Positions 12,796 through 64,000 of a stretch of 64,000 nucleotides of DNA are shown here, piece by piece. Source of the DNA: Carpediemonas membranifera BICM (taxonomy: Eukaryota; Protista; Fornicata). The notes under the pieces are model-generated. The model was not told the DNA's origin. It saw nothing but the letters and a program-made list of their open reading frames with translations, and ran no database searches. Positions within the stretch are counted from its first letter, which is position 1; every line of letters begins with the position of its first letter. The DNA lies in assembly GCA_019828565.1 (NCBI GenBank), contig JAHDYR010000069.1:438699-502698 (forward strand), given 5' to 3'. A program made the translations under genes and the position numbers.

Positions 12796-12888
12796 GCAAT
12801 GAGACGAAATAAACTATCGTGTCGACTGTATGACTTTGGGAAACAACATTCCTCGCCTATTACCTTACCTAATAATCAACTTTTGCTG

Positions 12889-18488: not shown

Positions 18489-19380
18489 TTGTGCTATTGT
18501 TGCGATTGTTGTGTTCCTGTCGTTCTTCCGCGACTTTTGCGTGCAGAAAAATTGAGCAACGAATAACTGCTCTGGAGCACTTTGTGAGTGAGTCTCAGAG
18601 CAGTACTGACCCACCTGTGAGTTTTTGGAGACGCATTGTCAAAGTGCAGTTTATTTGAGGCTCCAATGAAAACATGAAACTTAACGATGAATCAACAATA
18701 GACTCGGCTTAAGATGGATTTGGGGATGATCGGCCTGCCGCCGCTCAGATGCCGGGATTCTCCAGGGGCAGTGTGGCGGGTTGGGGTCGAACCGACTCTT
18801 GAAATGTCACGATGGAGAAGAACACAAGCAAGAAAAAGAACCAAGGCTGAAAAGGTGATATGCAACACACAAAGCCCGCACATGCATCGGAAAGAAGCCA
18901 CGGCGTGAAAAATTCCACCACTTCTGCAAGAGAAGACAATCAAGCTGCCATAGCCACAGAACCCCACCAATCTCCCACAAAAGACAGAAATGAGGCACAA
19001 TACACAACTTTTAGCGAAACTGGGCCTTCTGGAGGCATGATGTACTCTTTCGGGATGAGCCAAGGGGACGTGCCTCTGTGGGCAGCCTCGCACGTGAAAG
19101 CCGCAAGCCTAGAAGAGAGGCGGCGGCACAAAGGGACCTGATATCTAGTAAATCAGCCACGAATCATGATCGCAGATGCTTGGGACGGCAGAAGCCAGGG
19201 TTCGCCGGCCACATCTCAATCTGTTTCCATACCGTCTAATTTCTTGCCAGGTTGGGGTCATAACGCGGGCACACGTCTCGGATCAGTCGAGCCCTTGCAC
19301 TCAGCGGTCTCGAATCTGTCTAGATTTACGGTTTATCTCAATCCGCCCATATATCCGAGGCGAAAAACGCAAGCGCTGCA

Positions 19381-36200: not shown

Positions 36201-37054
36201 ACGGGCGCGAAGGCTCGTACGTTGGTGCTGAGGCGCATGACTGGTCCGCTTGTTGCCATCTTCAGAGAGATGGGCGTCGTCCGGCGGCCCGTAGCGAAGA
36301 AGCCGGGCTTGGACTTGTTGGGGCAGTCAGGCCTAAGGTGGCCGGAGAGGCCGCATCCATGGCAGACAGGCTGCGGCTTGGCAGGGGTACCGGCAGGCTT
36401 ATGGTTGTCTGGTTTGTTGGATGGGAAGTGGGGAGCAGGCGCTGCGGTAGCGTGAGGACGAGTGGGGTGGAAGCTCGGAGGCGGACGTGTGGCCTGAGGG
36501 CGCGGGACCTCGGGCTGACCGAACTCGGCGATGGTGCGCTTGGCCTCAGCCAAGGTCTCGACCTCTTGGAAGGCGGCACGCTTGGCGTCGGCGAGCGTCT
36601 CAGGTTCGGAGGCCTTGACCCGGCGGCGCAGTGAATCTGGGGACAGTCCGCGGATGAAAGTGCGGCGTAGTGTCTTCTCATCGGGGAGGTAAGTGGAACA
36701 GAGGTCCTCGACGCGGTCGAACCTGTCGAGGTAGGCGAGCAGAGCGCTGTTGCTGGCCGTCGTGGAGGACATGGCGGTTGCTTCCAGCTTAGACAGAACG
36801 GCCTGAGTGCTCTTGGGAGCGAATAAAGCGGAGTAGATCGCCGACAGGACGTTTTCATCTGGAAGGTCGTCAAAGTTGTCAATGCGAAGGCGGATCAGGC
36901 GTAAAACACGGCTGGAAATGAGCATACGGACAGATAGTGCTCTGTCGTCGGGAACTTGGGCGGAATAGGCCTCGAACTTGTCGTTGAAGCTGCAGAAGGC
37001 CGTTTCGGAACGAATGTCGTTGAGAAAAGGGGCTGAAATCGTTTGATAGTCCAT
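33239..37054 (-). CDS. Gag-Pol polyprotein of element A (at least three frameshifts in the RH/IN region)
   Basis: CHGCGLSGHLRPDC knuckle, LVDTGAS protease, YLDDV RT, TDAS/TDHKNL RNase H, HHCC+DDE integrase, YLVQEIL..FLIRWDGY chromodomain. Confidence 0.92.
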
Positions 37055-37072
37055 GGCGGTGAGTAAGCTTAC

Positions 37073-37162
37073 TGTGGCCAAATAAAGAGAACTAATGACG
37101 AAGTGAGGTTTATTCGAAACCCGATCAAGGGCAAAAATGGTTATAACTAAAATTGCCCAACA
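37073..37162 (-). repeat. 5' LTR of element A (90 bp)
   Basis: Identical to 33139-33228. Confidence 0.95.
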
Positions 37163-37995: not shown

Positions 37996-38808
37996 TCAGG
38001 GGGATTTACCGGCGTGGCGTCCCTTCCTGAGCGATGGAAGCTTCAATCTCGGATGCTCATTAATGTATGCGTCCAGGGCAGCTAATCCATCGATTTCGCG
38101 GCTGTAATCGGTCCATGTGCCTTCGTCGTCATCGTAGCCCTCCCACAAGAGGAGGAACTGAAGGTTGCCCGCTTGTCGGCGATGGTCAGCAACCTTCCTA
38201 ACCACGTACTCTCCTTCGTTGCGGGCTGCCCAGTGTTTGAGCTCAGCGTCAGTGTAGCTGCCCTCGAACTGGTAAAGCTCAGAGGCATGTACTGTCAGGC
38301 GGTGGTCAGTGGTGAGGTCTTGAACGACGTAGGTGTTGGGGCGGTCGGGATTGGTGGAGATGACCCGGACCGGGCCCCGGGGTACGATGCCTATGGCAGT
38401 TTTGCGCTGGATCATGGCGGCGGATCCAAGGAGATGACTCGCTGGATGACTCTGCGCTGGAGTTTGGCCACCGACAGCGCGTTGTCTGCTCTGTAAACAG
38501 CGTAGGGTGGTACGGAAGTGGTCGACGGTGAGGGAAGGTTGTCTAGTCGGTTCGTGGACGTCCCTGGCGTATAGGACTTCGTACGGCGACAGGTTGGAGG
38601 CGGTTAGAGGTGCGTTGTTGATTATATTCGTGATTCGTGGTAAGGCGTCCTCCCAGTCGTCGTCATGTTCGAGAATCCAGGCGCGTAGGTGTCTCTTCAC
38701 CTCTTTGTTCGCTCTTTCAACAGCACCCTGTCCCGCAGGATGATAAGGCGTACCGATCTCGTGTCTTATACCGTGGTCTTGGCAAAATTCTCTGATCATG
38801 CTGTTTTT
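37996..38808 (-). mobile_element. Truncated Gypsy element: integrase C-terminal half plus chromodomain
   Basis: GTPYHPAGQGAVERAN and YVVRKVADHR..FLLLWEGY; coding similarity stops at about 38808. Confidence 0.88.
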
Positions 38809-38825
38809 TCTGGTACTTTAACCGG

Positions 38826-38912
38826 TGTTGTGATTTCGTAATCAGTTGATGTGTATTTAGTGTGTGTATTTAATCTAAATGAAGTACCATCCACAGCGCT
38901 TTATACGCCAAA
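38826..38912 (+). repeat. 5' LTR of element B (87 bp, TG..AA)
   Basis: Identical to 40864-40950. Confidence 0.92.
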
Positions 38913-40863
38913 TTGATCAATTTGAGCTATGCAGTCCGATTATGACGCTCGTATAGCAGCACTAGAAGAGACTATAGGTAATCTGGTCTCTCTCGTGAGT
39001 TCTCTCGCGAAGAAGCCCGATGTTCGTGCCCATGATGTCCCTGATTCGGATTCCACGCTTGATTCTTCATGCCTTGAGTCTTTCGAGACTATCTTTAAGC
39101 TCTTCCCCTGCGACTTCAAGCCGGGATCGATCGAACGCCAGATTTTCCATTGCGCTCTCCCCTCCTCGAAGGAAGGGTGGTTCCGCTTGATCCTCGACTA
39201 TGACGATTCGATCGCCGCTTCATTTCTTTCTTCTCTCGTGCCCTCTCCGGCTCGCAGTTGAGCTGGTCTATAACTGAGAAGGAGGCTGCTGCCCTCTACG
39301 AAGCCGTCTTGAAGTTCGACAGTTTCCTCAGAGGAACTTCCTTTGTTGCTGAGGTTGACCATAAGAACCTCACCTTCTTGACTGCTAGCAAGTCGGAGAA
39401 GGTCAACAGATGGAAGAACAGACTGGGAGAGTACATGTTCGAGATCGCTTACATCCCCGGAGAGACTAATGTCCTTGCTGACACTCTGTCTAGGATGTTC
39501 CAACCGAAAACTTCCTTCTGTAACGCTGTCCAGTCTCGCCTCCCCGTTCTATCTCAAGAGGAGAAGGTTGATCTATTCCGCAAGGTCCACGGCAACGCTC
39601 TTAGTGGTCACAAGGGAGTAGCCGCCACTGTTCAGACCCTCAAAGACCTAGGCCACGAGTGGGAGAACATGTCTTCGGATGCGGCTACCTTCATTTCCAG
39701 CTGTGGCATCTGTCAGAAATTCCGTCTCCAGAAGACTGTCAAGACGCAACTTGGCCACCTTGTCACCGACACCCCTTTTCACACGGTGTCTATCGATGCC
39801 ATTGGTCCCCTGCCAGTAGACGAGTCGTCTGGATCCAAATATGTGCTGACAATTATTGACAACTTCACAAGATGGGTCGAGCTGGTCCCACTGAGTGACC
39901 TTGGCGCTCTCAGCGCTGCCGAGGCCTTGGTGGAAAGAGTGTACTCACGTCACGGTTTGCCCCACTTTTTGCACTCCGACAACGGCTCCCAGTTCGTCAA
40001 CGACCACCATTGCTGCGTTGAACCGGTCTCTGCATATCGAACACACCACCATTTTCCCTTACGTCTCCCAGCAGAACGGTATAGCTGAAAGGGCCAATCG
40101 CGAGGTTAGGCGTCATCTGAAGACCCTCTTGCCTTCCCTTGGAAGACGTTGGAGCGACTGGAGTTCCTGTCTACCTCTGGTCCAGTTTGTCATGAACAAC
40201 GCCAAGCACAGGATCATTAACACCACGCCCTACGCCATGCTCTATGGCGATGTCCTTTCCCCATCCAACAGCCTGTTACCGAGGACGTTGACCCCTAACC
40301 TTGACTCTTACGAGTCCACCTCGTCTTATACCTCCGGGTTGCTGAGCAGATTGAGGGAGATCCACGACCTCGCCAGAGCCACCCAGTCCTCTGCCTTGGA
40401 CTACCCCTCAGTAGAGCCTGATGTCTTCAAGCCTGGCGACTATGTCCTGCTGGCCCCACCTAAGGGTCCGCGTAGCAAGACGCTCCCGAATTACCGAGGC
40501 CCATTCATGGTGAAAGACTCGCTTCCGAACAACCAATACGCCTTACAGGCCTTTTTCAGGGAGGGCGGAGCTGGTGTCACATGTACACCGTCTGAGGAGG
40601 TTCCATCGATCCTTCTTAACTGAGGAGGAGATATCTGAGCTCGCCAAGTTTGATGATGATGATGAATTATACGTTGTCGAATCAGTAGTGAGCCATTCGA
40701 CCGATGAGGACGGGAACATCGTTTTCAGACTACGCTGGAGCGGTTACGAGCCTGAAGAAGATACTTATCAGTGCTATGATGAGGATGTGAGAGGAAACGA
40801 ACAAGTTGAGTCGTATATCGACGCACACAAGTTGCGCGGCAAGCTCTTTGGAGAAGACGGAGG

Positions 40864-42870: not shown

Positions 42871-42875
42871 GCACG

Positions 42876-42969
42876 TGTCATGACGACCTCATTTAATGAT
42901 CAGTCTTATTTGGTCAATGATCTCAAACCTGCTTCTAAATTTCACTCTCTCAATTGTTTGGGTACCACA
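42876..42969 (+). repeat. 5' LTR of element C (94 bp)
   Basis: Identical to 47128-47221. Confidence 0.95.
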
Positions 42970-42980
42970 GTAATTACTGC

Positions 42981-45900
42981 ATGCATTTACCTGAAACAAA
43001 ACTCAACAACGCCCCGTTCCTGCGAAAGGCCACCACCAAGTCGTGGTATACTTTCCGTCAAGACTACGAGCAGTATGCTGCCCGTGAAGCCGATCCGATC
43101 GTTGCCTTTGACCTAATCGAAACGCAGGTCCTAGAGGTTCTTAAGATCCGAATCCCTGAACTTGAGGGGTTCCTTGAGTACGCTAATGAAACGCCGGATG
43201 AAGAGCCGGCCGATACCTCTGAACTCAACGAGGCCTTTATCACCATGGTAGACGAGCTGATGCAGCCTCTGGATGAGGTGGACGCTTTAGATCGCTTTAA
43301 GGACTTGTCGTGCGGCTCTGAGGGTAACCTCATTGACAACATGGCCGCGTATGCCCTGGCGTATAAGCGTCAAGTTCGTAACTGTTGTAAGGTTCGGCCC
43401 ACGGAGAAGCTCATCGTCGATGCCTTTGTTGCTGGCATCAGGTACGGTCGCTTGAAGGAGCGAGTGAATGCTAAGAAGGCGAAGACGCTTGACGAGACGA
43501 TCGCCGAGGCATTCATCCAGGCCACGGAAGCAGAGAAGGCTCGCAGAGAGCACCAGCGTGTGGAGCGAGAGAGTGCGACCTCCGCAACGATGACTAAGGC
43601 TAAGGAGAAGTCGGAAACTGCTTGTGAGTACTGCCAGCGCAAGGGTCACACTGCTGATACGTGTTGGAAGCGTAAGCGTGACGAGCGTGAGGGAGTAAAG
43701 GGGCAGAAGTACGTTCATCTTAATGCTTTGGTCGCGGAGGACCGCGACAACAGACCCATTGGCGAGGTGGGCATCCTGGGGAGAGTGTTGGCGTTCCTTT
43801 ATGACACAGGGGCCTCTGCCGACTTTATATCCCAATCCCTCGTCAAAGAGCTCGGCCTAGTCGTCGAGCCCGACCATGCTAAGGTTAAGCTGGCCACTGG
43901 TACGATTTACAACTCACCCGGCATTGTTAAGTTGAGTGCAGATTTTGGAGTGTTGCCATCTACTGGGCGGAGAACTCAAGCTGCTCTCAATTTGCGGGTG
44001 CTACCCGGGCTGAAGCCGACATTAGTTATGGGAATATCGACATTAAGTGCGTTGGGGCTAATCACGATCGTCAAGCCGACGATGGAGAATTCTGGAGAGC
44101 CACACTTCGCGGAGCTTGATGAAGATGAAGTAGACGAGACGTTATTTACCCTTGCTGAAGCGGAGCACGAACTACAGATACGTAGCTTCCCTGAAGAGAC
44201 TAATACCATCCTAAGCAAGTACAAAGACGTTCTCGGCGACATTTCGCAGCCAGCAGACGTTCCACCCTTCGAACTGGTTCTTACAAACCAGAAGGTTATC
44301 AACATCCCTCCATACCACGTCTCGGCTGAAGAAAGAGAGGATATGCAGCGCCAGACGGCGCAGCTGGAGGATCTGAATGTGATTGAGGAGTCTACGAGCA
44401 ACTATAACAATCCTACGGTGCTTGTATGGAAGCGCGATCGCACCCGCAGGCTCTGCTTGGACTTTCGGCGCCTTAACGACGCGACGGAGGACTTCGATCA
44501 CGACCTCCCTATCATTGACGATCTGGTAGCAAGACTAGAGGGTAAGACCCTCTTCGCTAAGCTGGACCTAAGCAAGGCCTTTCACCAGATTCCTATGACC
44601 AAGAGCTCACGCAGACTAACGGCGTTTACAGTTGGGAAGCGTAAGTACCAGTACAAGCGTTTAGCTTTCGGACTCAAAGGGGCCGCAGCCTTCTGTCAGA
44701 AGACCCTCGAATCCGTACTGGGCGATGCACTGTGGACACGGTGTCTCGCATATGTAGACGACATAGTAATATTCGGAGAGAACCAGAGAGAGTACCTCGA
44801 CAATCTGGACTATGTCTTGAGAAAGCTCAACTCGGCCAAGTTGAAGCTGAATCTGTCCAAGTCTGAGTTCGGACTGACAGAAATAGAATACTTGGGCTGG
44901 CTTGTGAATGGCGACGGCAAGCGAATCGCGCCTGACCGCCTAGAAGGCATCGACCGCCTAACCAGCCCGAGAGATGTTGCCGGAGTCAGAACCTTACTCG
45001 GGTTCACGAACTATTTTAGCCATATGATTCCGAACTACGGCAATATGATGGAGCCAGTCCTGGCTCTGACGAGAAACCAAGGAAGAGTTCCGTTGGGAGA
45101 AGGCCCAACAAGATGCCCTAGTCGACATCAAAGCGACCCTATCTCAGAACAACATGTTAAGTCACCCCAAGCGTGGCTGCCAATTAATCCTACAAACCGA
45201 CGCGAGTGACTACGCTGTCGGGGCAGTTTTGTTACAGATCGAAGACGGGGAGGAGCGTCCGATTGCTTTCTATTCCAAGACACTATCGGATGTTCAAAGA
45301 AGGTGGAGCACCTATGAAAAGGAAGGCTTCGGCATTTATTACGCTATGATCAAGGCCGAGCGGTTCCTAGTAGGCAGGCCGTTTACTGTGAGAACGGACC
45401 ACCGGAATTTGCTGTATATCGCGACAAGCACGAACGCTAAGGTAACTAGATGGCGCATGGCACTGGAAAGGTTCGACTATTCCGTCGTACACGTGCCTGG
45501 TCAAGCGAACGGTGCTGCCGACGCGCTATCTCGCCTATGCGGTGCAACAGTCGAGGCAGATGATCACGCCACGTGGATCTCCGAGGTTCACGGAGGCATA
45601 CACGGCCATCTCGGAGCGAGAGCGACGGTGAACAAGCTTATATCGCTCGGTAGGAGGTGGAGGGGCATGTATAAGGACGCAGAGGAGTTTGTCCAGTCGT
45701 GTCCTGTGTGCCAGGTCACGCGCAAGACGGCCAAGCCCGTCCAACACTTACGCCACCGTACGGCAGGTCGCCTGCCGTTTGATGTCGTGCAGGTAGACAC
45801 GATCGGACCCATCGCGGAGAGCGAGGGTCTGCGGTACGTGTGCGTGTTAATTGACACGTACTCGAAGCTAACTATGCTGGTCCCCACGCGTTCGACGGAC

Positions 45901-46818
45901 GCAGATGCCGCGGCAGGGGCAATTTTGGCCTGGGTGGGTCACTACGGAATTCCCCGGGTGATTCACAGCGACGGGGGCAGCCAGTATAGAAATAAGCTGA
46001 TTGACGCTCTAATGGAAAGGCTCGGGTCGCAACATCACGTCGGCACGCCTTACCGCCCGGGTTCTCAAGGAATAGTTGAGAGGGTCAACGCCGAGGTTAA
46101 GAGGCATCTAGAGACGCTAATGCTCGATCTGCAGGAGTTTAGATGGACGCGGCTACTACCTTTGGCTCAGTACATCATTAATTCAACATCTGTGGCCAGG
46201 ACAGGCCTATCGCCACTGAATTTGCTTTATAACCAAGACGTGGTCGTAAGACCAGAAGAGATCATGAGCAATGAGAGCAAGATGCCATTTGAGGCCTTCA
46301 AGCGCAGCCTGGAACTACAGAGAGTCATCCAAGACCAGGCGCTGCAACAACAAACACCATCAGAAGCATCACACGTGGCCCTATCGAACAAGCCAGTGCT
46401 GGTAACGACCACTGTCGGCCGCCGCACGAAGCTGGCTGGGCCAATGTGGTGCCAGGGACCCGCAGAGTCGCCGAACGTTTACTACGTGGAGAACCTGACG
46501 ACAGGCGTAGTGGCTAAGGTCCATGCCGAGCGTCTAAGACATTTTGAGTCTGACGCGACAAGGGCTGAGTTGACACGGCTCGCGGCCCAGAGAGTTGACG
46601 AATATGTCGTAGAAGCGATCGACTCTCACAAATTTGAGGACGGCGTCCTTCACCTACATGTGCTGTGGGAGGGGTACCTCGAGGAAGAGGCGACATGGGA
46701 ACGCTTCAACGCCGACCTTGATGAACTTAGGGCGTTTGAGGAGTACCTCGCAGACAAACCGAGTTTGCGCAGAAAACTCCGAGGTCAAAGGAAATTAGCT
46801 TCCTATAGGCAGCGCTAA
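42981..46818 (+). CDS. Gag-Pol polyprotein of element C (single frameshift at about 45075)
   Basis: CEYCQRKGHTADTC, LYDTGAS, YVDDI, TDAS/TDHRNL, HHCC, SDGGSQY..VERVN and YVVEAI..VLWEGY chromodomain. Confidence 0.95.
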
Positions 46819-47127
46819 TAACCAACGGCTCATCAAAAAGCCATTTTGGGGTTTTGCCCAGTTGGTGACCGCAGCCTAGGGGGGGAAGAGCAGAACGTTG
46901 GAATCTAGTTACTGATATTGGTTATTTCTTATGTTCTACACCATTCTGTGCGCTATTTGTTCGTTTAGAACAGCGTTCTTCAGACTATTGTGCTCAATTG
47001 CGTTTTTGACTTCACTGGAGTCGGTCTGGCGGGTTTTGCATTTCGCCGGACTTGAACCGTTAGAATTTTTGCTGACGGTTGGGAGGCACGTTTGAGCTTG
47101 TGGACGGTTTGGGATCATGGGGGGTAG

Positions 47128-47221
47128 TGTCATGACGACCTCATTTAATGATCAGTCTTATTTGGTCAATGATCTCAAACCTGCTTCTAAATTTCACTCT
47201 CTCAATTGTTTGGGTACCACA
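47128..47221 (+). repeat. 3' LTR of element C
   Basis: Identical to 42876-42969. Confidence 0.95.
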
Positions 47222-48859
47222 GCACGTTCTGACCAGCGTGTTGAACCTTGACAAGGCCAAGCAGCGTCCAGAAGTCCTTCATAAGATAGTGACTCACATG
47301 CATGACAGGTGGAATGAACGTGACATCAGCGTACTTTGTGAGCACGTGAAGTGGGCCATCTATCTCGTTGGCATAGGTCAGACAGCAGACATCTCGGTGA
47401 CCATCGCGGGACCCAAACCGTGTCATGTCTTTCACGCCACCAGCGTCACGAAGACGGATGCTATCTGCGATTGTCCAGCGATCGCAACGATTGGCAAACG
47501 GGTCGCTTGCGACCTTTCCCATGTGTAGGGAGGAGAATGGAGAGCGGTAGTATCGTCCCCGCTTGACGCCACTAACAATCTGCAACGCTTTGTGATCGCC
47601 GCAGATCCCGAGCAGGCTGATGACAACACGGCTGCGTGGGAGCAACGAACTGTCACCACATGCGAAGGGGATACCAATGAGCTTGTTCATTAGCCGCTGT
47701 ACATCATCAAAGAACGAAGGAATGAGCTTCTCTGTGCCCTGAAATGTAAGAAGCGTCATGGGTGGGGTAATCTTCTGTGGTAGGGCTGCTCCCTCGCGAT
47801 CAATTATGCGATATTTGACCGCCGTACAGTCGGCCCGATATCCATCAAACCATAGGAGCATCTCAAGACCATAAGCCTCCTGTCGGCTCTCCGGGTTAAT
47901 AGTGACGGATTGAACGAACTTGCTTGACTTGATATCGCGCTGAACTCGGTCGGGGAACTTCAGCATGAACTTAATCTGGGCGAAAGGGTCATAGGACAGA
48001 GCGCTGATCACCATCCGGTGAGATTTCTTTGTTCCACGCGGAATGATGCCCATGTTCCGGCATAATCTCTGAATCTCCGGCAGCTTGGATGGATCATCAT
48101 GCGAAATGTATAGCCGTGACTCCCCCGATATCTTCTCGAAGTGGTGAGCGAAGAGGCAGTCGTGTTCATCGAGAGTCTCTTGCAGGTCGGTGTGGGTGGT
48201 TGGGTCATATAGGACGTAAAAAGCCTCCGCGACTTCCACGCTACGCGTGAAACCGGCTCCTGCTTGACATTGAAGCTCTTGGTTAGACTCCCCATCACGC
48301 CCAGAGACATCGGGCTGCTCAGGAGTGAACGCGTTGACGTCCTCGATCAGTGTTGGGTCTGATATAACAGATCGTATGGCTGGGATGGACAGCAGGTCAT
48401 ACCCAAGATTCTGGAGACTGTCTACCACCGGTGGAGTGTGAATTCAAGGCGAACTCCCATGTCGGAGGCCATTGAAACAAATGCATGGCGGAGTCGGTCG
48501 TAGCGATTCTTCCCTAACTCGACGGCACAGATAATTGCCATGGCCGTGTATAGGCTCTTCGTCTTCGCCTCGTTGTCGACTCGCGTAACAGTCACATGAG
48601 CAGTGCTGTGATTCCTCATCAATGCGCTCCAATCAGCATTAACGACTGCACTACGTAACGTAGCATCACTATGTGTCACCCTCAGTGGACATGACGTCAG
48701 GAAATCTCGGAGAATGCGCAAGCACTGCTCCTTGCTGTCTAAACGAAACGATTTGTCGCGGTTTCGGAGCAGAAACTCGTCTAAGACAGCGGTGATGATA
48801 GATCCAAGAGAACTGTCCGCCCCATAGGTGATGACGACTTCCCAGTTCTCGAAACGCAT
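47222..48859 (-). pseudogene. 5' part of a putative RAG/Transib/CMC-like DDE transposase (frameshift at about 48425)
   Basis: LLWFDGY (first Asp), ICGDHKALQIVSG (second Asp, D-x-K motif) and IPPVMH. Confidence 0.5.
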
Positions 48860-52181: not shown

Positions 52182-52656
52182 CGTATATCGCCAAGAGACG
52201 TTAAATGGTTACTAAAAGTTTATGTATATCGCCTGCGGCTTGTAAGCACTCACACCGTGACTACCACCAGCCGTCATCACACCCCTAGCCCTACCCACAC
52301 GTCCATTCTCGCCGATGCTGATTAAATCGTCCGGCCAGCGAGCCGGGGCCTTTCGCAAATTTAATATGGCCAAGAGACGTTATCTGCGGCTGAAACGAGC
52401 CCCATATAACCCCCTATGAAGTTATACGGAGAAATCATCGCCGATTTTCACGTTTCGGCGAGCTCCGGCCAAGGGGTCCAGGAGTCAGCTTTTGGGGGAA
52501 GGTCTGTGGTGCTCTAACGTACCTCGGGACGCACTGTGGAGGCCCCTAGAGTACTCGGTCATGGCATGTCAGACCAAGGGTCCCTCAAATCTGGCCCTAT
52601 TCAGGATGCACCCCCTACATACTGTCCAGGGTTCAGGAATTTCCCTTATTGGGTAG

Positions 52657-52692
52657 GGGAATTTCCTCGGGCTTTCCCCCGAGGAAATTCCC
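52657..52692. repeat. Perfect 15-bp-arm hairpin between divergent genes
   Basis: gggaatttcctcggg-ctttcc-cccgaggaaattccc, followed 20 nt later by an A-run. Confidence 0.9.
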
Positions 52693-53057
52693 TAGCATTT
52701 CGACTCGGTAAGAAAAAAAAAAAATCAACAACGAGCTGTATTCATAATCTATAAATGAGGTTGAATACATGCCTACACATGAGGACTACTCATGCGTAGT
52801 TTTGAGCTTTAAATCCTGCTAGAAAAAAGTAACATAGGGACAATTATTCCTTGGGAGTTCAGACTCAAAAATCGGGCTGGGGGGAGGAAATGGTCCATAA
52901 GTACGCCTTATGGGTCGCTTCCTCCTCTCTGCCCTTTTTTTATTGACTTCTGATTTGCCAGATTTGACACATGTTCGAGGTGAGTCTTAGATTACTCAAA
53001 ATGGCCTCCCTGATTCAGCAGATAGACTCAAAATTTCACAATTCGTACTCAAAACCA

Positions 53058-53134
53058 ATTTCAACAGACGTCTGTTGCAAAATCTGCCAAAAACGCACTT
53101 TAAAGTCATTTTTGCAACAGACGTCTGTGGAAAT
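53058..53134. repeat. 25-bp inverted repeat whose arms are themselves palindromic, abutting the kinase ATG
   Basis: atttcaacagacgtctgttgcaaaa ... ttttgcaacagacgtctgtggaaat (1 mismatch). Confidence 0.88.
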
Positions 53135-54385
53135 GGTCTTTAAGCTCTCCGCTGCCGATTTGACGCAACTACACAAGACTAACTACAGTAATACGTACAT
53201 TGCCGACATTAGCGGGGTCAAAACTGTCGTCAAGGTCGATAACTGTATGACACTTCGCCTGACACACGAAAAGACGATACTTCAGGCAATGAAAAGCCCA
53301 TTTATTGTTACAATCGTCGATGTGGGCTTTGTTGACAGCGATCAAGCGTTTGCCACTCGCTTTGTTGACCATATGTCGTGGCGAGACGTTCTGGCACTAC
53401 CAGTACCGGATCAATGTCGCTACTTGCGGCACTTACTGTTAGCTCTCAGCCATGTGCATGAGAATGGATTCATCCACGGCGACATCAAGCCCGACAACTA
53501 CCTTTTCAACCGAGAAGACGGTGGATTACTCATTGACTTCGGCTCTGCCATCAAAATAGAGGCTCCTACTGGGATTAACAGGTATATGGGACAAGACATG
53601 AGAGGGACACCTGGTTTTATCCCCCCGAGCTTCGTGCCGACGAACTCAGTCGGAAATCGAAGCATTGTACAGTAGCTATGCGGGAACCACAGAATTTGAA
53701 CCCCTTCCAGGCTTCCAGGAACACCACAACCAGAAACACCAACATGCACACAGTTGATGCGGCATACGACATCTTTTCCTGCGGCGTTATCGTCCTCATG
53801 ATGGCATTGCGACTGGATAAGTCTCCATTTCGATCTGTGAGAGTGGATGGTGGCAAGCCAAGTAACCCAGACGAGCATATTGGCGCTCTATATAACATGG
53901 CGTACTTCTACGGCCGCGAAATCACGATACACAGCAAGAAGAAGAATGCAGCCCGTGGTTTGATGATCAATCCGACTCTCTGCACGAGAGGAAGCCCTCC
54001 GACACAGTATAGGAGCCTTTATGACCTTGCAATGGGGATGCTCAGCTATAATCCGGAGGATAGACCAACAGCTTTGATGTGCGCTGAACATCTCAACGAT
54101 ATCGCCGCCCTAGCAGCAACGTTCGCATCAACACCACTGATGATCAACGACCAGGTGACAATCTCTCAGGAAACGCTCGCTGCCGCCAAACTCACCGTTG
54201 AAGCACTTCGAGAAACCCGATTTGCTGGCCGATGCATTGCATGTGGCATGCCGGTTCACGATAATCGAACAATAACTTGCAAGACACACCACCAAGATTA
54301 CAGAAGCATCATGAACCCCCACACAAAGAGAAGAGGACGAGTTTGGAGGGTTCATCGTGATCTATCATTGATTATTGATATGTAA
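53133..54385 (+). CDS. Ser/Thr protein kinase, Cdc7-like, with C-terminal Cys/His motif (frameshift in C-run at about 53625)
   Basis: VVK, HGDIKPDNYLFN, DFG, RGTPGFIPPE (restored by +1 C), DIFSCGV, MLSYNPEDRPTA and CIAC..C..H. Confidence 0.8.
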
Positions 54386-54859
54386 CCGCCCAGTATCGAA
54401 TCACCTCACTACCATGGGATGATCGCATTCACCTTCAAAAGAAAGAGATGAGGCCGCATACTCGACCAGATATAAAGGAGATATGCTGCAGCCTTGAAAA
54501 GAAAGAAAGAAAGAAAAGAAATTTATGGTGCTTGGATTCTGACCCCGGACTGAGCTTGTTTCCCGTGCTGCAGCCTTGCGCTGGCTTTATAGACAATACC
54601 CAGTTGTTTACACTAAAACCGAAAAATCAGTCCAGTAGACGCTCGAATCGAACTGGAGTGGGGTGGCTGTGATACAGTGTTCGTTCCTGTAGTACCCAGG
54701 CAGAAGACCCGACCGGACGATATGGCCTGGAACTCTACCGGCAAAAAGCAGCTGGCGGCCGCTGAGGAATATGTGGAAGGCGCTTCCAGAATGATCTTTA
54801 CACTACTTTCTTTGCTTCTATCTTGTACTTACTGTTAATCACTCTCATCATCTTTTTGT

Positions 54860-56571
54860 CTACTTGTGGATGACGGAGCGCCTTCCTGTATTTGCGCTTT
54901 TCTTTTGATACCCTCTGGGAGACTTGACAAGTTCCGCATGGTCGTCCTGGAGCAGAATAAAGTGGGTAATGCCATGTCTGGAACAGAACACCTGGAAATT
55001 CTCACAACGATCAGCAGCTGAGTCGCCAGAAGGGTACAAACCCCAAAACTGGTGACCATGTGTGAACAATATCACTGTAGAATTATTACCGTTGTTGCAC
55101 ACCATGATGACATTACGCATGTAGATCATGGAAAACTCTCGCACAGCATCATCGGTAAGCCAGCCCATCTTGGAAAACAGTTCTGCCTTAGCGGAATCCT
55201 CCGTCAGAGCCGTCCGCTTCACCCGGCTTTCCACCAGCTCGGCACGCAAAGCCATGGCTGCCTCAAGATCTGTTCTGTGGGTCAGGGTGGTCATATCCCG
55301 GAAATGGCCGTCCCTAATCATGCAACAGCAGTGCGCAACACAGCTGCCATCACGGTGTGTCGAGTATTTCCTCCATGACTTCAACCCATTCACAATTTCC
55401 TCAACGAAGGACTGTGGCTGACCGCTGGTGCCGATTGGAATCTCTTTCTTCTCAATCATATTGTTGATGTGAGACTCAATGGCCACAGATGACTCGTGTT
55501 CAGACTTGATCAAGAGCAGAGAGCGAAAGTCGACGATCTTAGCAGTGGAATCGAAGTTCGGGTACGCAGGCCGGTAAACCTTGTTAAGCAAAAGGATAAC
55601 AACGCGGCGGGGAGTCTTGCGTCTTCCTCCGATACGATCTTCGCTTTTGCACAACCGTCAGGTCTTGCGATAATGACTCTTCGCTTCATGTACGAGAGCT
55701 TGGACATCCAGAACCAGAATTGCGCGATCTCATGGAGGTGATCTGGCTGAGTCATGATTCTGATGAGCCACGTGGCGTCATGGGCGGCAAGTTCGACGGC
55801 GGGTAGCTCATCTGGTGTCAAAAAGCACCACACACCGTTGCATTGTGAACTTGAACTTGCCAGAATACAACTGAAAGATCGGCCGTGGGTCACGGGCGGA
55901 AGACTGGCAGGCGGCAATATACACACCCATGATTCGGGCGAACTTGCAGACATGACTCTCATAATTCTTCAGAATTGCCTCGATGAAGTCGAAGGCAGTT
56001 GTCCAGATGGCTGGTATCGTGCGGGCATCGACCACAAACCGACCATCAGAGTCCGAGTGACCAGTGATAATGAAAAAAAGTCTCATAGTCACCATACAGC
56101 TTGCCGAATTCCTTGATTTTTCGCCTCAAAATCGTCCTCGTTCTCGAACTGGGCCGTCTCGATAACCGTATACTCGCTATGCATTGCCGCAAAGATCTGA
56201 CGAATGCGTTCTGCGTGCCCTCCAATGGAGACAGATTCATCAATCGAAAACTGCCTGCTATCTCCAGCAACGAACCCATAGGTTGGCTCGAACACGATGA
56301 GGACACGTGTATTCTTCAGCGCCAGTGCAGTACGGGTGCACTTGTGACGTCGGGATGGCGAGGGAAAACCGACGTTGCGTGTTTCGCTACTGATGTCCCC
56401 ACAGACACATTCAAACAGCTTTGATCCATCCAGATATCGATTTCTCCACCCCATTGCATTGAAAATGTCTGATCGTCGTTCATGACGCCAATGCCAAATT
56501 GAGGGTGAGAAAATGGCATCGCACTTTAAAAGCAGCTTTATGTGAGAAATGTATTGCATATAATTCTGCAT
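54860..56571 (-). pseudogene. Frameshifted gene(s) with a caspase/CHAT-like segment and a C-terminal OTU-like domain
   Basis: LFFIITGHS..VYIAACQS (55808-56095); THRDGSCVAH..GWLTDDAVREFS..ILLQDDHAEL (54860-55654). Confidence 0.55.
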
Positions 56572-56581
56572 TCAGAAGACG

Positions 56582-57439
56582 ATGGCTAGAACAAAGCAAA
56601 CGGCTCGCCGGCCTACGCAAGGTGGAAAGGCGCCTCGCAAGCAGTTAGCAGCGATAGCTGCGCGGAAACAATACTTCGTCGTACCGCACCTACAAGCCGT
56701 TGTCTCAGGCCGCGTTGGAGAATTGCACGGCAGTCCTGCAAAAAGGCTGATGCTGATATCCAAGAAACTATTCTGTCGTGCATCAAAGAAGACGGAGGCG
56801 CACAACTTCAAGCAGATGGTCAAGAATTCAACACGAGCTGGTTTCCGACTTGCATTCAACACTGAGTCCGAGTCTGTCCACATGAACCCATCGAGGAAGG
56901 ACGAGGTGGCAGCGCGGGCAGAAGCTGCTTACCAATCAGCGCTGCATGCCTTCCGCAGCGTTGACCCTGAGACTGCTGCGACAGAAGATATGAAGACACT
57001 GCTTGACACCTTAGCGGTTGCTCTTGACGCAACGCCAGATGTGCCACATGCTCGCCTGGATCCTGAAGAACAGCGTCGGTTCCTGAAGCTGAAGGATACG
57101 AAGAAATTCTCCAAGTACTGCCTTCCTCGCAGTGACGAGAAGTTTTTCTCGACCAATCTTCGCGCTGCCTTGCGCGAACACCTGGCGAAGGTGTTTCCAA
57201 ACCTCCCTTGGAACAAGATTGTCTCCTGCTTCTCCCCTGAAGCGATCAATGCTGATTTCTTTATCCTGTCCACGAGCAATGCCACCTACGACGAAGCTTG
57301 CCTGACAATGCCGTCTGATGAGAGAAAGAAGCTTCGCAACCATCTTTCCATGACTGAAGAACGGCAGATTGCTCGTCAAGAGATGGAGGTTGAGATTTAC
57401 CAGTTTTTAAGAGAGCTCGGTATGTTCTCTACAGTGTAA
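56582..57439 (+). CDS. Divergent histone H3-derived protein with long C-terminal extension
   Basis: [29 protein letters not shown] is an H3 tail; [10 protein letters not shown]..AHNFK resembles H3 LIRKLPFQRL..AQDFK; 285 aa in total. Confidence 0.8.
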   Translation: [285 protein letters not shown]

Positions 57440-57645
57440 AAGATGCAATTGTTGACCATTGACTCGATCAGCGCGCCTCTAAACCCCACTATTCGAAGGC
57501 GTCTCTGCGGGCTGAAGAGACATAAAAGGTTAAAAACAGTTTAAGGAACTCGTCCAACGTCTTCGCATTGTGCGTCATGGCCACCTTGTCCTTCTTCGTC
57601 AACCTCGATTTGGTACCCTTTCTCTTCACAGTCGTCTTCTTCTTC

Positions 57646-58440
57646 TTAGAAGGCTCCCAGCTCCCATTGGCGCATGCTTTTTCTTAGCTTCTTCTGCTCT
57701 AATCTGTACTTCTCCTCCTCCGTCATGTCTGCTTCCTTTTTCTTTGCCTTCGCCTTCTTCTTCGACTTCATTACATCTAACTTCTTCGCCTTCTCTGCAT
57801 CCTCCTGGACCACGCGAGAAATTGAGTGCTTCACGTCCTTCGGTACATCACGATTCCTCGCATGCTTAACCACGACAAAGACATTATCGTCAGTGCCGCC
57901 ACCTTCAAGGATGACCTTGTCCTTTGGGATCTTGCTGGTGGCAACCAAGAAGCAGATCGGCTTCTTATCCACCTTGAATAGGGCAAACCTGCAGTTGCCA
58001 GCAGCCGAATGATGGCAAAGCTTGTTGACGCATGCTTCATCAGGAGTCATGAGGTGCAGCTGTGACGATAGCTGAATCCGAGAAGGCTGATCGCTAAGAA
58101 CACCCTTGGCAATCCCGAGCACTTCTCCCTCATCAACATCGCCAGCCGTGACCAAACCATACATCATGTCATCGCCCTTTGACACCATGCATGTGCTGCA
58201 CTTCAGAGAAATGAGCGATTGGCCGTCAAGCTCGACAATTTGGTCATCATCGAAAGGCAAGGCGTCTATCTTCATCGCGGCTTCGCCCATGTCCGCCCAA
58301 TTTGCATAGACACGACGCGCAAGCTCTTCCGGAAAGCAATCGCAGCAAAAGTTGACAGTTCCACTTTCTTGCTGCATTCTACGCAGTTTATACCAGCAGT
58401 TTATACGCAGCAATGACACAGCACCAAGAGCGTGGCACAC
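57646..58440 (-). CDS. SET-domain-like protein (divergent; 5' end uncertain)
   Basis: YGLVTAGDVDEGEVLGIAKG, KLCHHSAAGNC and FLVATSKIPKD follow SET motif order; Lys-rich tail. Confidence 0.6.
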   Translation of the reverse strand: MCHALGAVSLLRINCWYKLRRMQQESGTVNFCCDCFPEELARRVYANWADMGEAAMKIDALPFDDDQIVELDGQSLISLKCSTCMVSKGDDMMYGLVTAGDVDEGEVLGIAKGVLSDQPSRIQLSSQLHLMTPDEACVNKLCHHSAAGNCRFALFKVDKKPICFLVATSKIPKDKVILEGGGTDDNVFVVVKHARNRDVPKDVKHSISRVVQEDAEKAKKLDVMKSKKKAKAKKKEADMTEEEKYRLEQKKLRKSMRQWELGAF

Positions 58441-58579
58441 AACCCTTCAATGACCCATGTAAGGTTGGGTGGGTCTTATGTCAGGCTGTTTCTTTTTCAA
58501 TCATTTCAATCATATCCTGCACAGACTTCGTTGATGAAGAAGTTCTGCTATGACGAAGCCGGCTTGTCGCGACGAGAAC

Positions 58580-59344
58580 TGGGCCATAGAACTGAAATCG
58601 GCATCCGAATATCGCGGCACGCATGGGTATTTACCCCCAGAAATGTTCAAAGTGTGTTCGTGTTCGGTCATTCCGCCGTCAACGAGCGCCATACGAGACC
58701 TCAAGCATACGCGCATGACTGCATCGGCTCTTCCCGCCTGTTCTTCATGTCGTCACACCTGCCTCCGACATTTTACTCGTGCGGTGTAGTCATTGCTCTT
58801 TTACGGTCTCCCCAAGTCCCCCTTTGCCGCGAAGGTGACTGACATGGCGCAGATCGACAACAAGAAGAAGAATAAGATGCTGAAGCTTGGTAGCTTGCTG
58901 AACTGGTGCCACTTCTATGGTGGGCAGTTGCAGTTGTCACGTAAGACACTCGAACCGCTCAGAGATTGTCTCAACTTCGTGAACGTGAACTCTGCACTAC
59001 CGATTCGCGGCACAACGCCACCCACTTGCCTCGGAATGTACGACCTGGCAATGCAGATGCTCCACTTCGACCCAACGAAGCGTCCCACTGCTGCCGAATG
59101 TCTTGACAAGCTCAAGGTCATCATGCGCGTGCATGAATGCGTCGCCAAGCCGAGTCCGCTTCTGTTAGATGACACTGAACAGGTCTTACTCTCTGTAGAT
59201 CAGCGAAAGAGAATGGTCGACTGCTGCCAACTGGGGTCCTGGAGGAAAAGTTTAGAGATGCGATTCAGAAAGGGTCGTAGCATTGAACTCGAAACCATGA
59301 GTCCTAAGAACACCGGCGCATGCCCAACACTCACCCCAGGGTGA
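58580..59344 (+). pseudogene. Second kinase paralog, C-lobe only, frameshifted
   Basis: RGTHGYLPPE, KSPF, FYG and YDLAMQMLHFDPTKRPTAAEC are colinear with 53133-54385. Confidence 0.75.
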
Positions 59345-60149
59345 AATACCTGGCCGTGGTTTGAACATATACCGACACATAACTGGGTAAATACGTAAAT
59401 GTTGTGCGAAAATTGCGTCTTGTTCTGCACAGAGCGATGACGAAACTAAAAACGGAACAAGAAGAGGCCTGAAGATTTAACTGCCCGGCGGTGCAGGTTC
59501 GTCAAGTGGCCGGAGATGCCGCTTCCAGTAAGGTGTATGCCGTACAGCTCGCCGTATCCATCTCCGTGCCCGTCTCCATCCCCCACTCCGCCTTCAACGC
59601 CAGCCCCGCCACGCCTGTTGTAAGTCCGCCTCCATCTCCTGTCCGCAGTTCACCACCGAGTCTCGAAATCGAATCACCTCACTACCATGATTCCCCGCAA
59701 TACCATGATGTATGTGATGACCATTAAACGATCTCCTTCTATACAATGACTTCTGAAGCCGTCCGACCAACGGCACAGAACGGTTTATAACATGCATATG
59801 ATCCATTCTGGTGCCTTTATCCTCTATAACCAACATCAGTCCATCAAAATGAATCTTGCAACAGAATACTCATCCACACGCATCGAGAACGAAAAAGAAG
59901 CATATAACCAACATCAACAACCTAATAGAAGGCTGCATGCAAGCGTAGAGCTCTCCTAGTCGATTCTTCAATTTATCAAGCATCAATCTCCACGTCAGGA
60001 TGAAACTGTGCGCCCAAAAGCTCAGAGATGCCGTTATAGATGATATAACGACGTCTCTGAGCTTTTCAGCGATGTCAGTTTCTGGCCACGTCAAGTTCGG
60101 CTCTGCGAAAATAACAGTGCATTGCACTATAAGTCATACATTTGGAATA

Positions 60150-60620
60150 CAGCAATGCACTGTTATTTTTCGCCAAAACCACGCTGACCTACCATTGTCC
60201 ATGGGCTTGACGGGGGTGATCTTCTCGGCTTGGATTTGGCTGAAACTTGGTATATGTGTAGTATTTGATATGTTAGGACGGATCCAAGATTTTTTTACAT
60301 ATCGTTCGAGTCTATTTACCGAGATATACGTAAAAAGCAAAATTAGGGTTGAGTCTATTCTGGCTGAAAAAGCGGTATGGTGGGTTCTCTGACTGTCTGA
60401 ACACGGCTCCAGAAGTTTTTACGTGATGAATTGGCATATTTATATTGCTTTGCGTAAACAGAAAATTTTGACGAGTACCTACAATCAACTACCTGCATAT
60501 ACATGCTATAAACATGCTTAAAAATGCCTTCAGTCGTACGTGCTATATACTAAAAGCTCTTCCTGCATCTTATTTCCGAAAGAACAAAATATTCACTCTG
60601 AAAATAACACTGCATTGCTG
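60150..60620. mobile_element. Putative MITE with about 20-bp TIRs
   Basis: cagcaatgcactgttatttt (60150) versus aaaataacactgcattgctg (60601-20), 1 mismatch; AT-rich non-coding interior; flanks TA / TG. Confidence 0.55.
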
Positions 60621-60682
60621 TGAAATTTTTGGAAAAAGATGCTAGATATCACTATTCTACGCAGCTGGATTCGTGAGGCATC

Positions 60683-62326
60683 ATGAGAAGACCGTTAGGA
60701 TTGCTTCTGCTGCACCTGGTCAAGAGCGTAAGGCTATTCGAGCAGATAAGAGTATGTTCGAGAGATGGTTCGCACTCCGGACGAATAAGAGCCGCTTGGA
60801 GCACCTCAAAGGAGCACAAAGTGATAACGAAGACAGCCCTGAGATGCGCGCTGGTCGATAACATCGTCATTGACGAGATTCGTGATGTGTTTGGTCTCGC
60901 TGGCCGAGTTTCACTAATGGATCTCATCAACAAGGCTTCCCTTCCCGAGCTCATGGCCATTGGTGACGACCTTGCCCGGCCCGAGCTGTCTAAGGTTCCT
61001 GCAGGCTTGTTTATGGAGGATGATCAGGTTGAAATCGTGCGGAAGCAGTTTTTTTGACCACTACACCGGATCAGCGATCACCTTTGAGGGATAACCGCGA
61101 GGCTGTCATGCCGTCACATCGTGGCTCTATTCATCTAGAAGGAACAGGCCGTCTCTTTTCTTCCAGATCAAGTCAACCTGATCCTTCGCGCTCTCTTCGT
61201 CGCCCCTGAGGGTGCACTGTCGAGGCCCGCCGCGTGCATTCCCCTACGAGGACATTCTTTCTGGTTGCAAGAATGATCCGGGAAGCGATGTGACATCAGC
61301 CCAGCCAGAGCGGTTGCGTCGAGATGTTGCCAAGGCAGCCGCCGAAGCTATTCAGGCAAGGAATGACCGCGAGGGAAGCCATACACTCGCTTGAACTCGT
61401 TACTGCATCCTATGCGCAAGATACAGGGCATGCATATGTGACACCACCCGCCAGCGACGCCGTGGAATTTTTCCGACACTGACGAGGACGAGTCCGATGG
61501 CCACGCTGAACCGGCCGCCATGCAGGGTGACGGCGTTCCTTTGCCCCAGACTGATCAAGACGTCGAAGTAGAGTCCGATGTGGACGACACAGACACCGTT
61601 GGTCTCCAGACGGTTTTACGATGTTGATGCAGAGGCCGATCATGACGTCCGCGAGCCAGTGTCCCTGCTTAATCACAGCTTAGCACAGCTAGACGACACC
61701 ATTGCAGGCCTTGATGATGTACCCGAGTCTGTGCGCTTGTTGGAGCAGTACGAGCCCTTGATGAAACGGCTTGCTGAGGAGAGGGAGGCGAGGGAGGCGC
61801 TTGAACAGGCTAACAGAGATTCTGAGGGAGTCCCAGAAGAGACTAGAAGCTGGAGTTAGGTCAGCAGAAGGGCGAGGATCAGGCGATCCATCAGTTTACT
61901 CAAGCAGAGTTGGCACGGGCGAGTGAGGCTGGGCTTGAAGCGCTCGCCGATGAACTCGAGGACAACTGGGCTGAGCTTGTCAGGCGCGCCGAGGAGGCAA
62001 CAATCGAGCTTGACCGCTACGTTGCTCTCGCTGCCTTGATGGAACTGTTCCAGAGGAACAATGTGGCTGGAGCTTTGTGGACTCGGATCAATAGCACCAT
62101 GATGAGGTACGGGGGCCAGAAGTTCATAACGGTCCCACCCCTAGACCTCGGTCTTACGCCTGAGATGAAGGCTATCATCGCACAGCACTCTCGAGAGAAG
62201 AAGACAAAAGCTCGTGTAACACAGGGGAGAGAAGCTGGAGTTTCCCCTGGAAGGAGCGTTCATGCTAGTGGAGCAGTTGAAGTAAATGGGCACGGCGACA
62301 GGGCGGAACAAGCAACCGCGAAATAG
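60683..62326 (+). pseudogene. Fragmented hypothetical gene(s)
   Basis: Series of same-strand short ORFs with protein-like, helical composition broken by stops and frameshifts. Confidence 0.35.
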
Positions 62327-63439
62327 AGATATCAGGTCATCCCTGACATTGTATGGCGAGAACTGTTCTCAGTCTCCGCTTTGGGAGCTCTAAGATCAGT
62401 CTGAGATGAGTTACAGATGTCCACACGGTATTCGTCAAACTGAGCACTTCTCCAAATGAAAATGTACTCGTGCTGCTTTTAATGAGTCTTTGTTGTAGTC
62501 ATAAACATAAGCAGCACCAATTGCCTTCATTTTGCCTGTTTCTGCCATTATTGATCTGCATATTGATTCCAAGCGACTATCTAAACAAAAGCGGCTTTGA
62601 ATTTCTTCAACAATGCCAATTCCGCGCATAATGTCCGATGAAATGCTGACCGCTTGTGATGCAGCTCCCTCAGGCGTTTCTAGATGTGGTTTTCATTGGT
62701 TTCATTCTCAGTGACACCCTTTACATAATTCATTTTACGTTATAAACATATCGAGACGAAATGAAGCAAGTGCCGAAAGAAGTCTCCTGGAACCTATCGC
62801 GCGTTCACTGGTCATGATCTTACTACAAATCTTTCAAAGATCACTTTTTCGGGCCATGTTGACATGCTTCTTTGTCATTGTCGATGATATCGACGTAGAC
62901 AGTGGCCTCTCACTGGGAATGCCCAAAGACTCCGTGTTATCGGCCTATAACACTGTCGTGTCGAACTTGCTTGTCCTGTGTACGGTGGTTTTGTTGCTTT
63001 GAAGAAGAACTTCAACGAGAAGGGTTGCTAGACTGGGCGAGATTTGGGTTATAAGCTCGGTTACACCAAGACTAAGCCGATCATCTACCACCAGTTGACG
63101 CCGAAAAGAGAAGCCCTAGCGCCAAGGATCTGTCAGTTTTCATGAAGGAGATGGCGAATGTCCTCAGACTAGCCAACGCCCTGATATGGACATCGAGAAC
63201 CTGAAGAAGATGAAGTTCATCTTCCCGACAGATCTACTTCTTGATGCCAGGCAAAGATATCACAAGCAAAGCGTGCAGACCAAAAGGCTGAGGGGAGATG
63301 AACCCAGCTTTCCTGCGTCTCCAATCAAATCTGAGTCACTGCTCAACGATAGCAACCTTCTTGGATCCATTAAGACTGAAAGAGATGCGAAGACTCCCGC
63401 TCGTGACTCTTCTCTGACAAACCTTCGGTCCAACACCAA

Positions 63440-63995
63440 ATGATCCAGGATCTTCACCAATACGTTGTTGGTGAACGAAAGTTCGATATGGCACATCAGC
63501 AAGAGCTGAAGCGTCCTACTGCTGATGACAGTGATGACAGTGATGTCAGCATTGCTGAAGACAGGTCCGCTGATTTCTTTCGATATGTTTATGCGTCAAC
63601 TAGCATTTTGCGCTGCGGGCATTGCACTTCCCCAGTTGGTTGGGCAATCCGGAGAACAAACTGACTTCGCCCAGTGCGGATCATGCAACCGCTGCTTTCT
63701 GCATGGGAGGTGCGTGAGGTGATTGGCTCAGCAATGGGAAGAAGGCCATTACCAATTTCACGTGTCCGGATTTATTGCCAACAGCTGCAGATGCACCCGC
63801 TGCAAGGCTAAGATCAAATCGTCAAAGGGAAGGGACTCTTTCTTCTGCAACATGTGCAAATCTTGGTATTGCAAGCCATGCGGTGTGGCCATGTGGGAGA
63901 CCTCGATTGATGGAACCGTTGCCAGGTTCTTATTTTGCCAGGTCTGCAAGGAAAGCCTCCCTGGCACTGAATCCGAGGTCTGGCATTGTGAGTAA
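63440..63995 (+). pseudogene. Tandem PHD-like zinc fingers (interrupted)
   Basis: CGHC..CGSCNRCFLHGRC, then CTRC..FFCNMCKSWYCKPC..FLFCQVC. Confidence 0.6.
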
Positions 63996-64000
63996 AGGAA

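Follow-up and report, generated by a model that had tools for sequence, protein, structure and literature searches.

A histone H3 tail at the start of an orphan open reading frame in Carpediemonas membranifera: a probable lineage-specific chimera

Does an open reading frame (ORF) that begins like histone H3 encode a histone? The question is raised by a locus of the free-living protist Carpediemonas membranifera, where an ATG-started ORF of 285 amino acids occupies positions 56582 to 57439 on the plus strand of the 64-kb stretch of DNA analyzed here (hereafter, the window). A sequence-only reading of the window had described the product as an H3-derived protein with a selectively edited tail and a long nonhistone extension. 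The locus itself is already publicly annotated, and misnamed as a histone: in assembly GCA_019828565.1, it is KAG9389682.1 (UniProt A0A8J6B473), a single-exon gene for a 127-amino-acid protein called "histone H3/CENP-A", located between J8273_8985 and J8273_8987 on contig JAHDYR010000069.1, whose end is about 28 kb away. The explanation that we favor, with a probability of roughly 0.6, is a lineage-specific chimera of C. membranifera in which an H3 gene supplied the 5′ end and an orphan coding sequence the rest.

The N-terminus of the ORF is a genuine homologue of the H3 tail (residues 1–28), with 23 of 28 residues identical. Compared by tblastn with canonical H3 (taken from P0001:170-305), it matched H3 residues 1–28 at 82.8% identity over 29 alignment columns (E = 4e-8 for the window and the NCBI locus searched together). 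Local alignment of ORF residues 1–30 to H3 yielded a score of 104, compared with 27 ± 5 for shuffled sequences (z = 14.7), and matches to H3 chains in the PDB were confined to ORF residues 1 to 31 or 33, with E values of about 1e-5. The ORF thereby carries the H3-type N-terminal tail expected of the Histone H3/CENP-A family (PF00125), and the assignment of the N-terminus to H3 in the sequence-only reading is borne out.

Relative to canonical H3, the tail carries the substitutions K9R, S10P, T22A, and K23I and a one-residue insertion (TQGGK in place of TGGK), and it retains the lysines K4, K14, K18, and K27. The retained lysines and the K9R, S10P, and K23I changes had been correctly listed by the sequence-only reading, which had passed over T22A and the insertion. 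That reading also listed S28Q, a change that does not hold outside the window, as the NCBI sequence has an extra G at this point and reads R. The description of the tail as "selectively edited" is not supported by a count of the changes: two of the six tail lysines are altered, compared with 6 of 29 positions overall, which is indistinguishable from random change.

Behind the tail, no histone fold was recognizable by profile or by sequence. Pfam returned no histone match for the whole window ORF at E ≤ 1, and none for the public 127-amino-acid model (P0004) or for the 177-amino-acid C-terminal piece at E ≤ 0.1. In shuffle tests against H3 residues 29–136, all of the post-tail sequences scored at chance level (z of −0.9 to +0.3); these comprised ORF residues 31–130 and 31–285, the segments S2 and S3 (S1, S2, and S3 being the successive parts of the ORF behind the tail; Table 1), and the NCBI version. 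An exhaustive phmmer search with residues 31–285 against 1.84 billion cluster representatives found no histone. Its only matches were the NCBI model of this locus, reached through S2, the sole part shared with P0004, and one repeat protein of 2,372 amino acids (P0005), whose 26% identity to residues 31–285 we judged to be a chance or compositional match. Running the alignment past the tail gained little: H3 residues 1–99 scored 44.7 bits by tblastn in the window, compared with 44.3 bits in the public sequence, where only the tail was aligned (a gain of 0.4 bit), and the few PDB alignments that reached residue 85 gained about 1.5 bits over tail-only matches. An H3 core segment was absent from both the 64-kb window and the 20.8-kb NCBI locus. 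This excludes a nearby histone-fold exon, and we therefore rejected a split gene as the explanation.

Downstream traces of the fold had been proposed in the sequence-only reading. The chance-level scores of residues 31–130 and 31–285 speak against them, and a further proposed trace in an adjacent frame, YKPLSQAALE, fared no better. It was not returned as a high-scoring segment pair, and the 28-residue piece of that frame, scored against H3 after its stop characters had been stripped, gave z = −0.37. Compensating frameshifts had been suspected at 56670–56745; the adjacent frame has the worst codon score there and carries stops, which argues against them. A decayed histone fold, as implied by the term "H3-derived protein", was rejected on the chance scores in all frames together with the lack of any histone beyond the tail in Pfam, PDB sequences, and the exhaustive protein search. 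Without a histone fold, the product cannot enter the nucleosome and is not a nucleosomal H3 variant; the suggestion of an "unsilenceable variant", which supposes that the protein occupies a nucleosome, falls for the same reason. As far as sequence comparison goes, only the tail is histone-derived and the remainder is an orphan.

Nor is the locus the published centromeric histone candidate. The genome paper assigns the CenpA candidate of Carpediemonas to J8273_4235 (PMC8516963, supplement) and states that "other divergent H3 variants" in Carpediemonas leave the annotation ambiguous (PMC8516963). Because J8273_4235 sits at a different locus, we ruled out the focal locus as the host CenH3, a possibility that the sequence-only reading had allowed for. 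The predicted product is neither an H3 variant nor CenH3. Since the protein has the tail and no histone fold, the name "histone H3/CENP-A" is misleading, and KAG9389682.1 should be excluded from counts of Carpediemonas H3 variants or CenH3.

The sequence behind the tail does look coding-like over most of its length. We scored reading frames with a codon-usage model trained on eight genes of the host genome and expressed the result as a log-likelihood ratio (LLR) per codon; in leave-one-out trials, the frame was called correctly in 95% of 36-codon windows and in 100% of 180-codon windows. S2 had an LLR of +0.40 per codon in frame 0 and S3 (56897–57436) had an LLR of +0.22 in the ORF frame, with negative values in the other frames; the frame of S2 and S3 was the only positive one of six. 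For comparison, the neighboring genes scored 0.09 to 0.20, the unannotated 177-codon piece of the public sequence +0.14, and the public 127-amino-acid model −0.04 overall. The tail together with S1 did not exceed 0 in any of the six frames. As S2 and S3 carry their coding signal in one frame, they point to a single reading frame that is interrupted in the public sequence at the run of G residues.

Relatives of S3 were absent from the 1.84 billion representatives, the word search, the viral and metagenome contigs, and Pfam. No paralog was returned by word searches that used the whole ORF or residues 1–130, and scans of viral and metagenome contigs contained no match for residues 69–285 or for the degenerate-DNA pattern of the variant tail peptide.

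These observations are best accommodated if a histone H3 gene contributed its start codon and first 28 codons, which were joined to an unrelated orphan coding sequence, probably by partial duplication or fusion. The fall in identity from 82% to chance level at codon 30 fits a fusion breakpoint at that position. The codon-usage contrast between the first 68 codons and the rest, combined with the lack of relatives for the rest, also points to a chimera. The orphan part would be S2 plus S3, which together span at least 217 codons and show the codon usage that is normal locally. The setting is compact and gene-like: the divergent J8273_8985 lies 62 bp away, the stops of the ORF and of the convergent J8273_8987 are separated by about 90 bp, and the host genome pipeline called a gene, KAG9389682.1, at the same ATG. 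In its present state, the proposed chimera may be intact, or it may be a recently frameshifted and decaying copy.

The choice between these states turns on the disputed frame. We compared the window with a 20.8-kb stretch of JAHDYR010000069.1 from GCA_019828565.1 (L001). Window positions 52618–64000 and L001 positions 4408–15752 are 98.9% identical over 11.4 kb; they differ by 75 indels, most of which lie in homopolymers, and by some 10 isolated substitutions. Three of the 75 indels, each of 1 base, fall inside the focal gene (discrepancies 1 to 3 in Table 1). Read from its ATG, the NCBI sequence encodes the tail, a different 38-residue stretch, 36 residues in the window frame, and then, after another shift, reaches a stop at 127 amino acids; the C-terminal 177 to 185 codons remain open there in another frame. 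The long nonhistone extension described in the sequence-only reading is thus in frame in the window, and out of frame in the NCBI sequence, where the same ATG gives 127 amino acids.

Several points weigh against an intact chimeric gene. The assembly that breaks the focal frame is the polished one; the public sequence was treated with Nanopolish and Pilon, with Illumina data (PMC8516963). The window is the less accurate of the two. J8273_8985, a 559-amino-acid gene on the minus strand (54860–56571; 7 indels), and a 424-amino-acid kinase (52971–54385; 3 indels) are single ORFs in the NCBI sequence and broken in the window, the former into at least five ORFs and the latter into two, and all 10 of the indels in these two genes are window errors. 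The C-terminus of J8273_8987 is also shorter in the window than in the NCBI sequence. The focal indels all match the bias of the window toward extra A/T and missing G/C (29:13 versus 5:11; Fisher P = 0.016). Furthermore, S1 has no coding signal in any frame (LLR per codon: frame 0, −0.06; frame 1, −0.21; frame 2, −0.05), with all values under the 10th percentile for true coding windows (0.05), and shows no H3 similarity in any frame. Neither a paralog nor an ortholog nor an environmental relative of the focal gene was found in the word, exhaustive, and contig searches. Finally, a single-sequence AlphaFold model of the focal ORF was mostly helical and of low confidence (predicted local distance difference test [pLDDT], 44; predicted template modeling score [pTM], 0.28); this confidence does not support a fold call or a fold search, and there are no relatives from which to build an alignment. 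The window departs from the polished reference by roughly one indel in every 150 bp, and frame-dependent readings of it need to be checked against that reference.

A dead fragment is the first alternative to consider. The locus would then be a partial H3 copy in a transposon- and orphan-rich region near a contig end, the 127-amino-acid NCBI version would be the true one, the 285-amino-acid ORF would result from consensus errors, and nothing functional would be made. We regard this as possible, if rather unlikely. It draws on the polishing of the NCBI assembly, on the record of the neighboring genes, in which every testable indel was a window error, and on the membership of the focal indels in the error classes of the window. 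The chance of a −1 error in the window within the 77-nt zone that is open in both frames is roughly 0.15. The lack of a coding signal in the NCBI 127-amino-acid model as a whole, the lack of homologs in word and exhaustive searches, and the retrotransposons and unannotated kinase in the surroundings are likewise in keeping with a dead fragment. A fragment of this kind would nevertheless have to account for the normal coding signal of S2 and S3, which are joined in a single frame only in the window, for the 185-codon frame that is still open directly downstream in the NCBI sequence, and for the 3′ untranslated region of approximately 475 nt that the 127-amino-acid model implies in an otherwise compact arrangement. 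These three features indicate that, even if the locus is now dead, it was an intact chimeric gene until recently. A residual NCBI error at the run of G residues and a true recent frameshift that is masked by a window error are about evenly balanced as explanations of the disagreement.

A second alternative separates the tail from the orphan. The orphan could start at an internal methionine (residue 57, 79, or 101), with the H3-like start as an upstream open reading frame or a relic in the 5′ leader, or S1 could be an intron. In-frame ATGs do occur within and just ahead of S2, the coding signal is confined to S2 and S3, and S1 contains many in-phase GT-AG pairs. However, the 82% H3 identity of the tail is read in the frame of S2 in both assemblies, low codon-usage scores are to be expected for a short basic tail, and the RNA-seq-guided NCBI model begins at the tail ATG. 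We consider two separate units very improbable. An intron in S1 was rejected, as the GT-AG pairs are chance-like, none of them has a strong donor or a pyrimidine tract, and the reference model has a single exon.

Equally improbable is a true but extremely divergent histone of the H3/CenH3 type, as the public name and the sequence-only reading suggest, one with a C-terminal extension, a long L1 loop, and a fold no longer recognizable in its sequence: although a weak collinear alignment (...AHNFK to LLIRKLPFQR...AQDFK), the published mention of divergent H3 variants in Carpediemonas, and the mostly helical AlphaFold model could be read in its favor, that alignment lies at the shuffle mean (z = −0.02) and adds 0.4 to 1.5 bits, the candidate α1 helix lies within S1, whose frame is disputed between the assemblies, the published CenpA candidate is another gene, the AlphaFold confidence supports no fold call, and neither Pfam nor the phmmer search with residues 31–285 returned a histone.

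If the chimera has an intact frame of 285 amino acids and is expressed, its N-terminus could have consequences of its own. Methionine aminopeptidase removes the initiator methionine before a small residue at position 2. The chimeric protein would then be expected to lose its initiator methionine and to expose a free ARTKQTAR... end. Such an end could engage enzymes and readers of H3 R2, K4, K14, K18, and K27, and would not engage those that need K9 or S10. Borne on the C-terminal domain, the tail might make the product a soluble decoy or adaptor. A tail-mimic role of this general kind is possible for the predicted protein. The more specific proposal, that the cell uses the protein as its own decoy or adaptor for writers, readers, or erasers of the H3 tail, with the K9/S10 switch abolished and possibly together with the adjacent SET-like protein, is one that we hold to be improbable. 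Were it true, it would represent histone-tail mimicry by descent, not by short-motif convergence, in an organism of unorthodox chromosome biology. A real and expressed 285-amino-acid product would be an unusually long H3-derived tail mimic, encoded not by a virus but by a free-living eukaryote. The proposed mimic would offer a natural reagent with which to learn what readers and writers of the tail occur in a deep-branching metamonad.

The neighbor invoked here is J8273_8987, which the sequence-only reading had called a SET-like gene that the focal ORF faces. Its convergent position was confirmed; its likeness to SET proteins is weak. The window version matched the Pfam SET profile at E = 0.11 and 13.3 bits, under the cut-off of 22.4, and the NCBI version had no Pfam match at E ≤ 0.1. 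The top 13 PDB matches were all to SETD8/KMT5A at an NHS...GNC stretch, with nonsignificant E values of 0.24 to 0.43. In the alignment with E = 0.24, LCHHSAAGNC is paired with LINHSKSGNC, so that the Asn is replaced by His, and KVILE is paired with the segment ahead of the SETD8 tyrosine, with no Tyr aligned to the latter. The protein has a Lys-rich C-terminal tail, and its stretch LCHHSAAGNCRF...LVATSKIP aligns repeatedly, and never significantly, to the SETD8/KMT5A SET signature. This stretch could be a degenerate SET domain or a chance resemblance. A single-sequence AlphaFold model of J8273_8987 was unusable (pLDDT, 35).

The other annotated neighbors are orphans with no Pfam domains. The 424-amino-acid kinase ORF, at L001 13984–15258, is intact in the NCBI sequence and matches Pkinase at E = 1e-22, and the gene list returned for that contig has no gene there. 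Two metagenome contigs (L003 and L004) that had been clustered with J8273_8985 proved to be unrelated to it and were set aside as a clustering artifact. The corresponding "90% identity" protein cluster (P0006) combines J8273_8985 with JGI metagenome proteins of 45 to 48 amino acids from phage-like contigs, which have no detectable similarity to J8273_8985 or to the window.

Chromodomain-integrase retrotransposons had been placed next to the focal gene by the sequence-only reading, which holds only loosely: the nearest chromodomain-integrase ORF ends 9.8 kb away. It belongs to a Ty3/gypsy chromovirus (Table 1), and a second chromovirus copy, in which no chromodomain was detected, lies at 33441–37081 on the minus strand. 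The direct repeats of the first chromovirus, 9 to 14 kb from the focal locus, were the only long terminal repeat pair found, and we rejected the idea that the locus is part of a mobile element bounded by repeats. The two assemblies cease to be colinear at window position 52618 (L001 15752). Beyond this point, L001 contains non-LTR reverse-transcriptase ORFs at 15659–18451 and 18671–20839 (RVT_1), with no match in the window by tblastx. The break may mean that a transposon insertion is polymorphic here or that the assemblies followed different paths.

On a larger scale, the window is divided by a step in GC content near 38000–40000, from 0.56–0.60 in the gene-dense half (with Sfi1-like, 5′-nucleotidase, MBOAT, and UTP25 genes) to approximately 0.50 in the transposon- and orphan-rich half. 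The GC content at third codon positions drops in the same way, from 0.71–0.89 to 0.53–0.63, and the focal gene lies in the low-GC half. Positions 19612–20884 are occupied by a tandem array of about 40 copies of a 30-nt unit, with a GC content of 0.64, a strong AT skew, and long ORFs that overlap one another in several frames of both strands. This array probably encodes an acidic Pro/Glu-rich repeat.

Table 1. Positions in the window of the parts of the focal ORF, the assembly discrepancies within it, and neighboring features
Feature	Position	Strand	Description
H3 tail copy	56582..56668	+	29 codons aligned to H3 1–28; same letters in both assemblies
S1	56670..56784	+	About 38 codons; frame differs between assemblies, both open
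S2	56788..56894	+	About 36 codons, ending in HMNPSR; ATG frame in both assemblies; coding-like
S3	56897..57439	+	About 180 codons plus stop; C-terminal orphan; assemblies differ by one substitution
Discrepancy 1	56669..56670	+	Extra G in NCBI, AAACGAATA against AAACAATAC; directly after the tail; codon 30 Q versus R; later frame altered
Discrepancy 2	56785..56787	+	AAA in window, AA in NCBI; ATG frame regained in NCBI
Discrepancy 3	56895..56896	+	GG in window, GGG in NCBI; sets S3 in frame (285 amino acids) or not (127 amino acids)
J8273_8987 (KAG9389683.1)	57646..58440	−	Convergent neighbor; 281 amino acids in NCBI; window version 98% identical to P0003 (hypothetical protein J8273_8987)
Ty3/gypsy chromovirus	42875–47231		105-nt direct repeats, 96% identical, 4,252 bp apart, at 42875–42979 and 47127–47231
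Chromovirus protease-reverse transcriptase ORF	42954–45209		Long ORF
Chromovirus RNaseH-integrase-chromodomain ORF	45154–46818		Long ORF

How does the proposed chimera compare with known systems? With the Histone H3/CENP-A family (PF00125), it shares a homologous tail over the first 28 residues, including AARK. In contrast to members of that family, it has no histone fold by any of the tests applied, and we do not count the predicted protein as a structural or functional member.

Another parallel may be found among the H3 N-terminal mimicry proteins (H3TMs) described from the human proteome, for which the rules are a removable initiator Met, Arg-2, and Lys-4 (Chen et al. 2021, PMC8166343). On sequence alone, the M-A-R-T-K start of the focal protein has all three of these features. 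Like the H3TMs, it would be a nonhistone protein whose mature N-terminus reads A-R-T-K. The resemblance of H3TMs to H3 is limited to the first few residues and attributed to convergence or chance, whereas the homology of the focal protein to H3 extends over 28 residues and implies that it descends from an H3 gene.

Short histone mimics also include the ARSK motif of influenza NS1 and the automethylation motifs of G9a and SETDB1. Such short linear mimics of viruses and chromatin enzymes have been reviewed (PMC6028506). The focal protein would share with them the idea of a nonnucleosomal protein that offers an H3-like peptide to readers and writers. Their motifs span 4 to 6 residues, are often internal or C-terminal, and mostly correspond to the ARKS/ARKT of K9 or K27. 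The focal protein, in contrast, has lost the K9/S10 motif (ARRP) and would copy the whole tail at a true N-terminus.

Chimeric genes and gene fragments that arise by partial duplication or fusion are an established general class. The focal locus resembles this class in its breakpoint at codon 30, its two codon-usage characters, its lineage-restricted orphan partner, and its transposon-rich surroundings.

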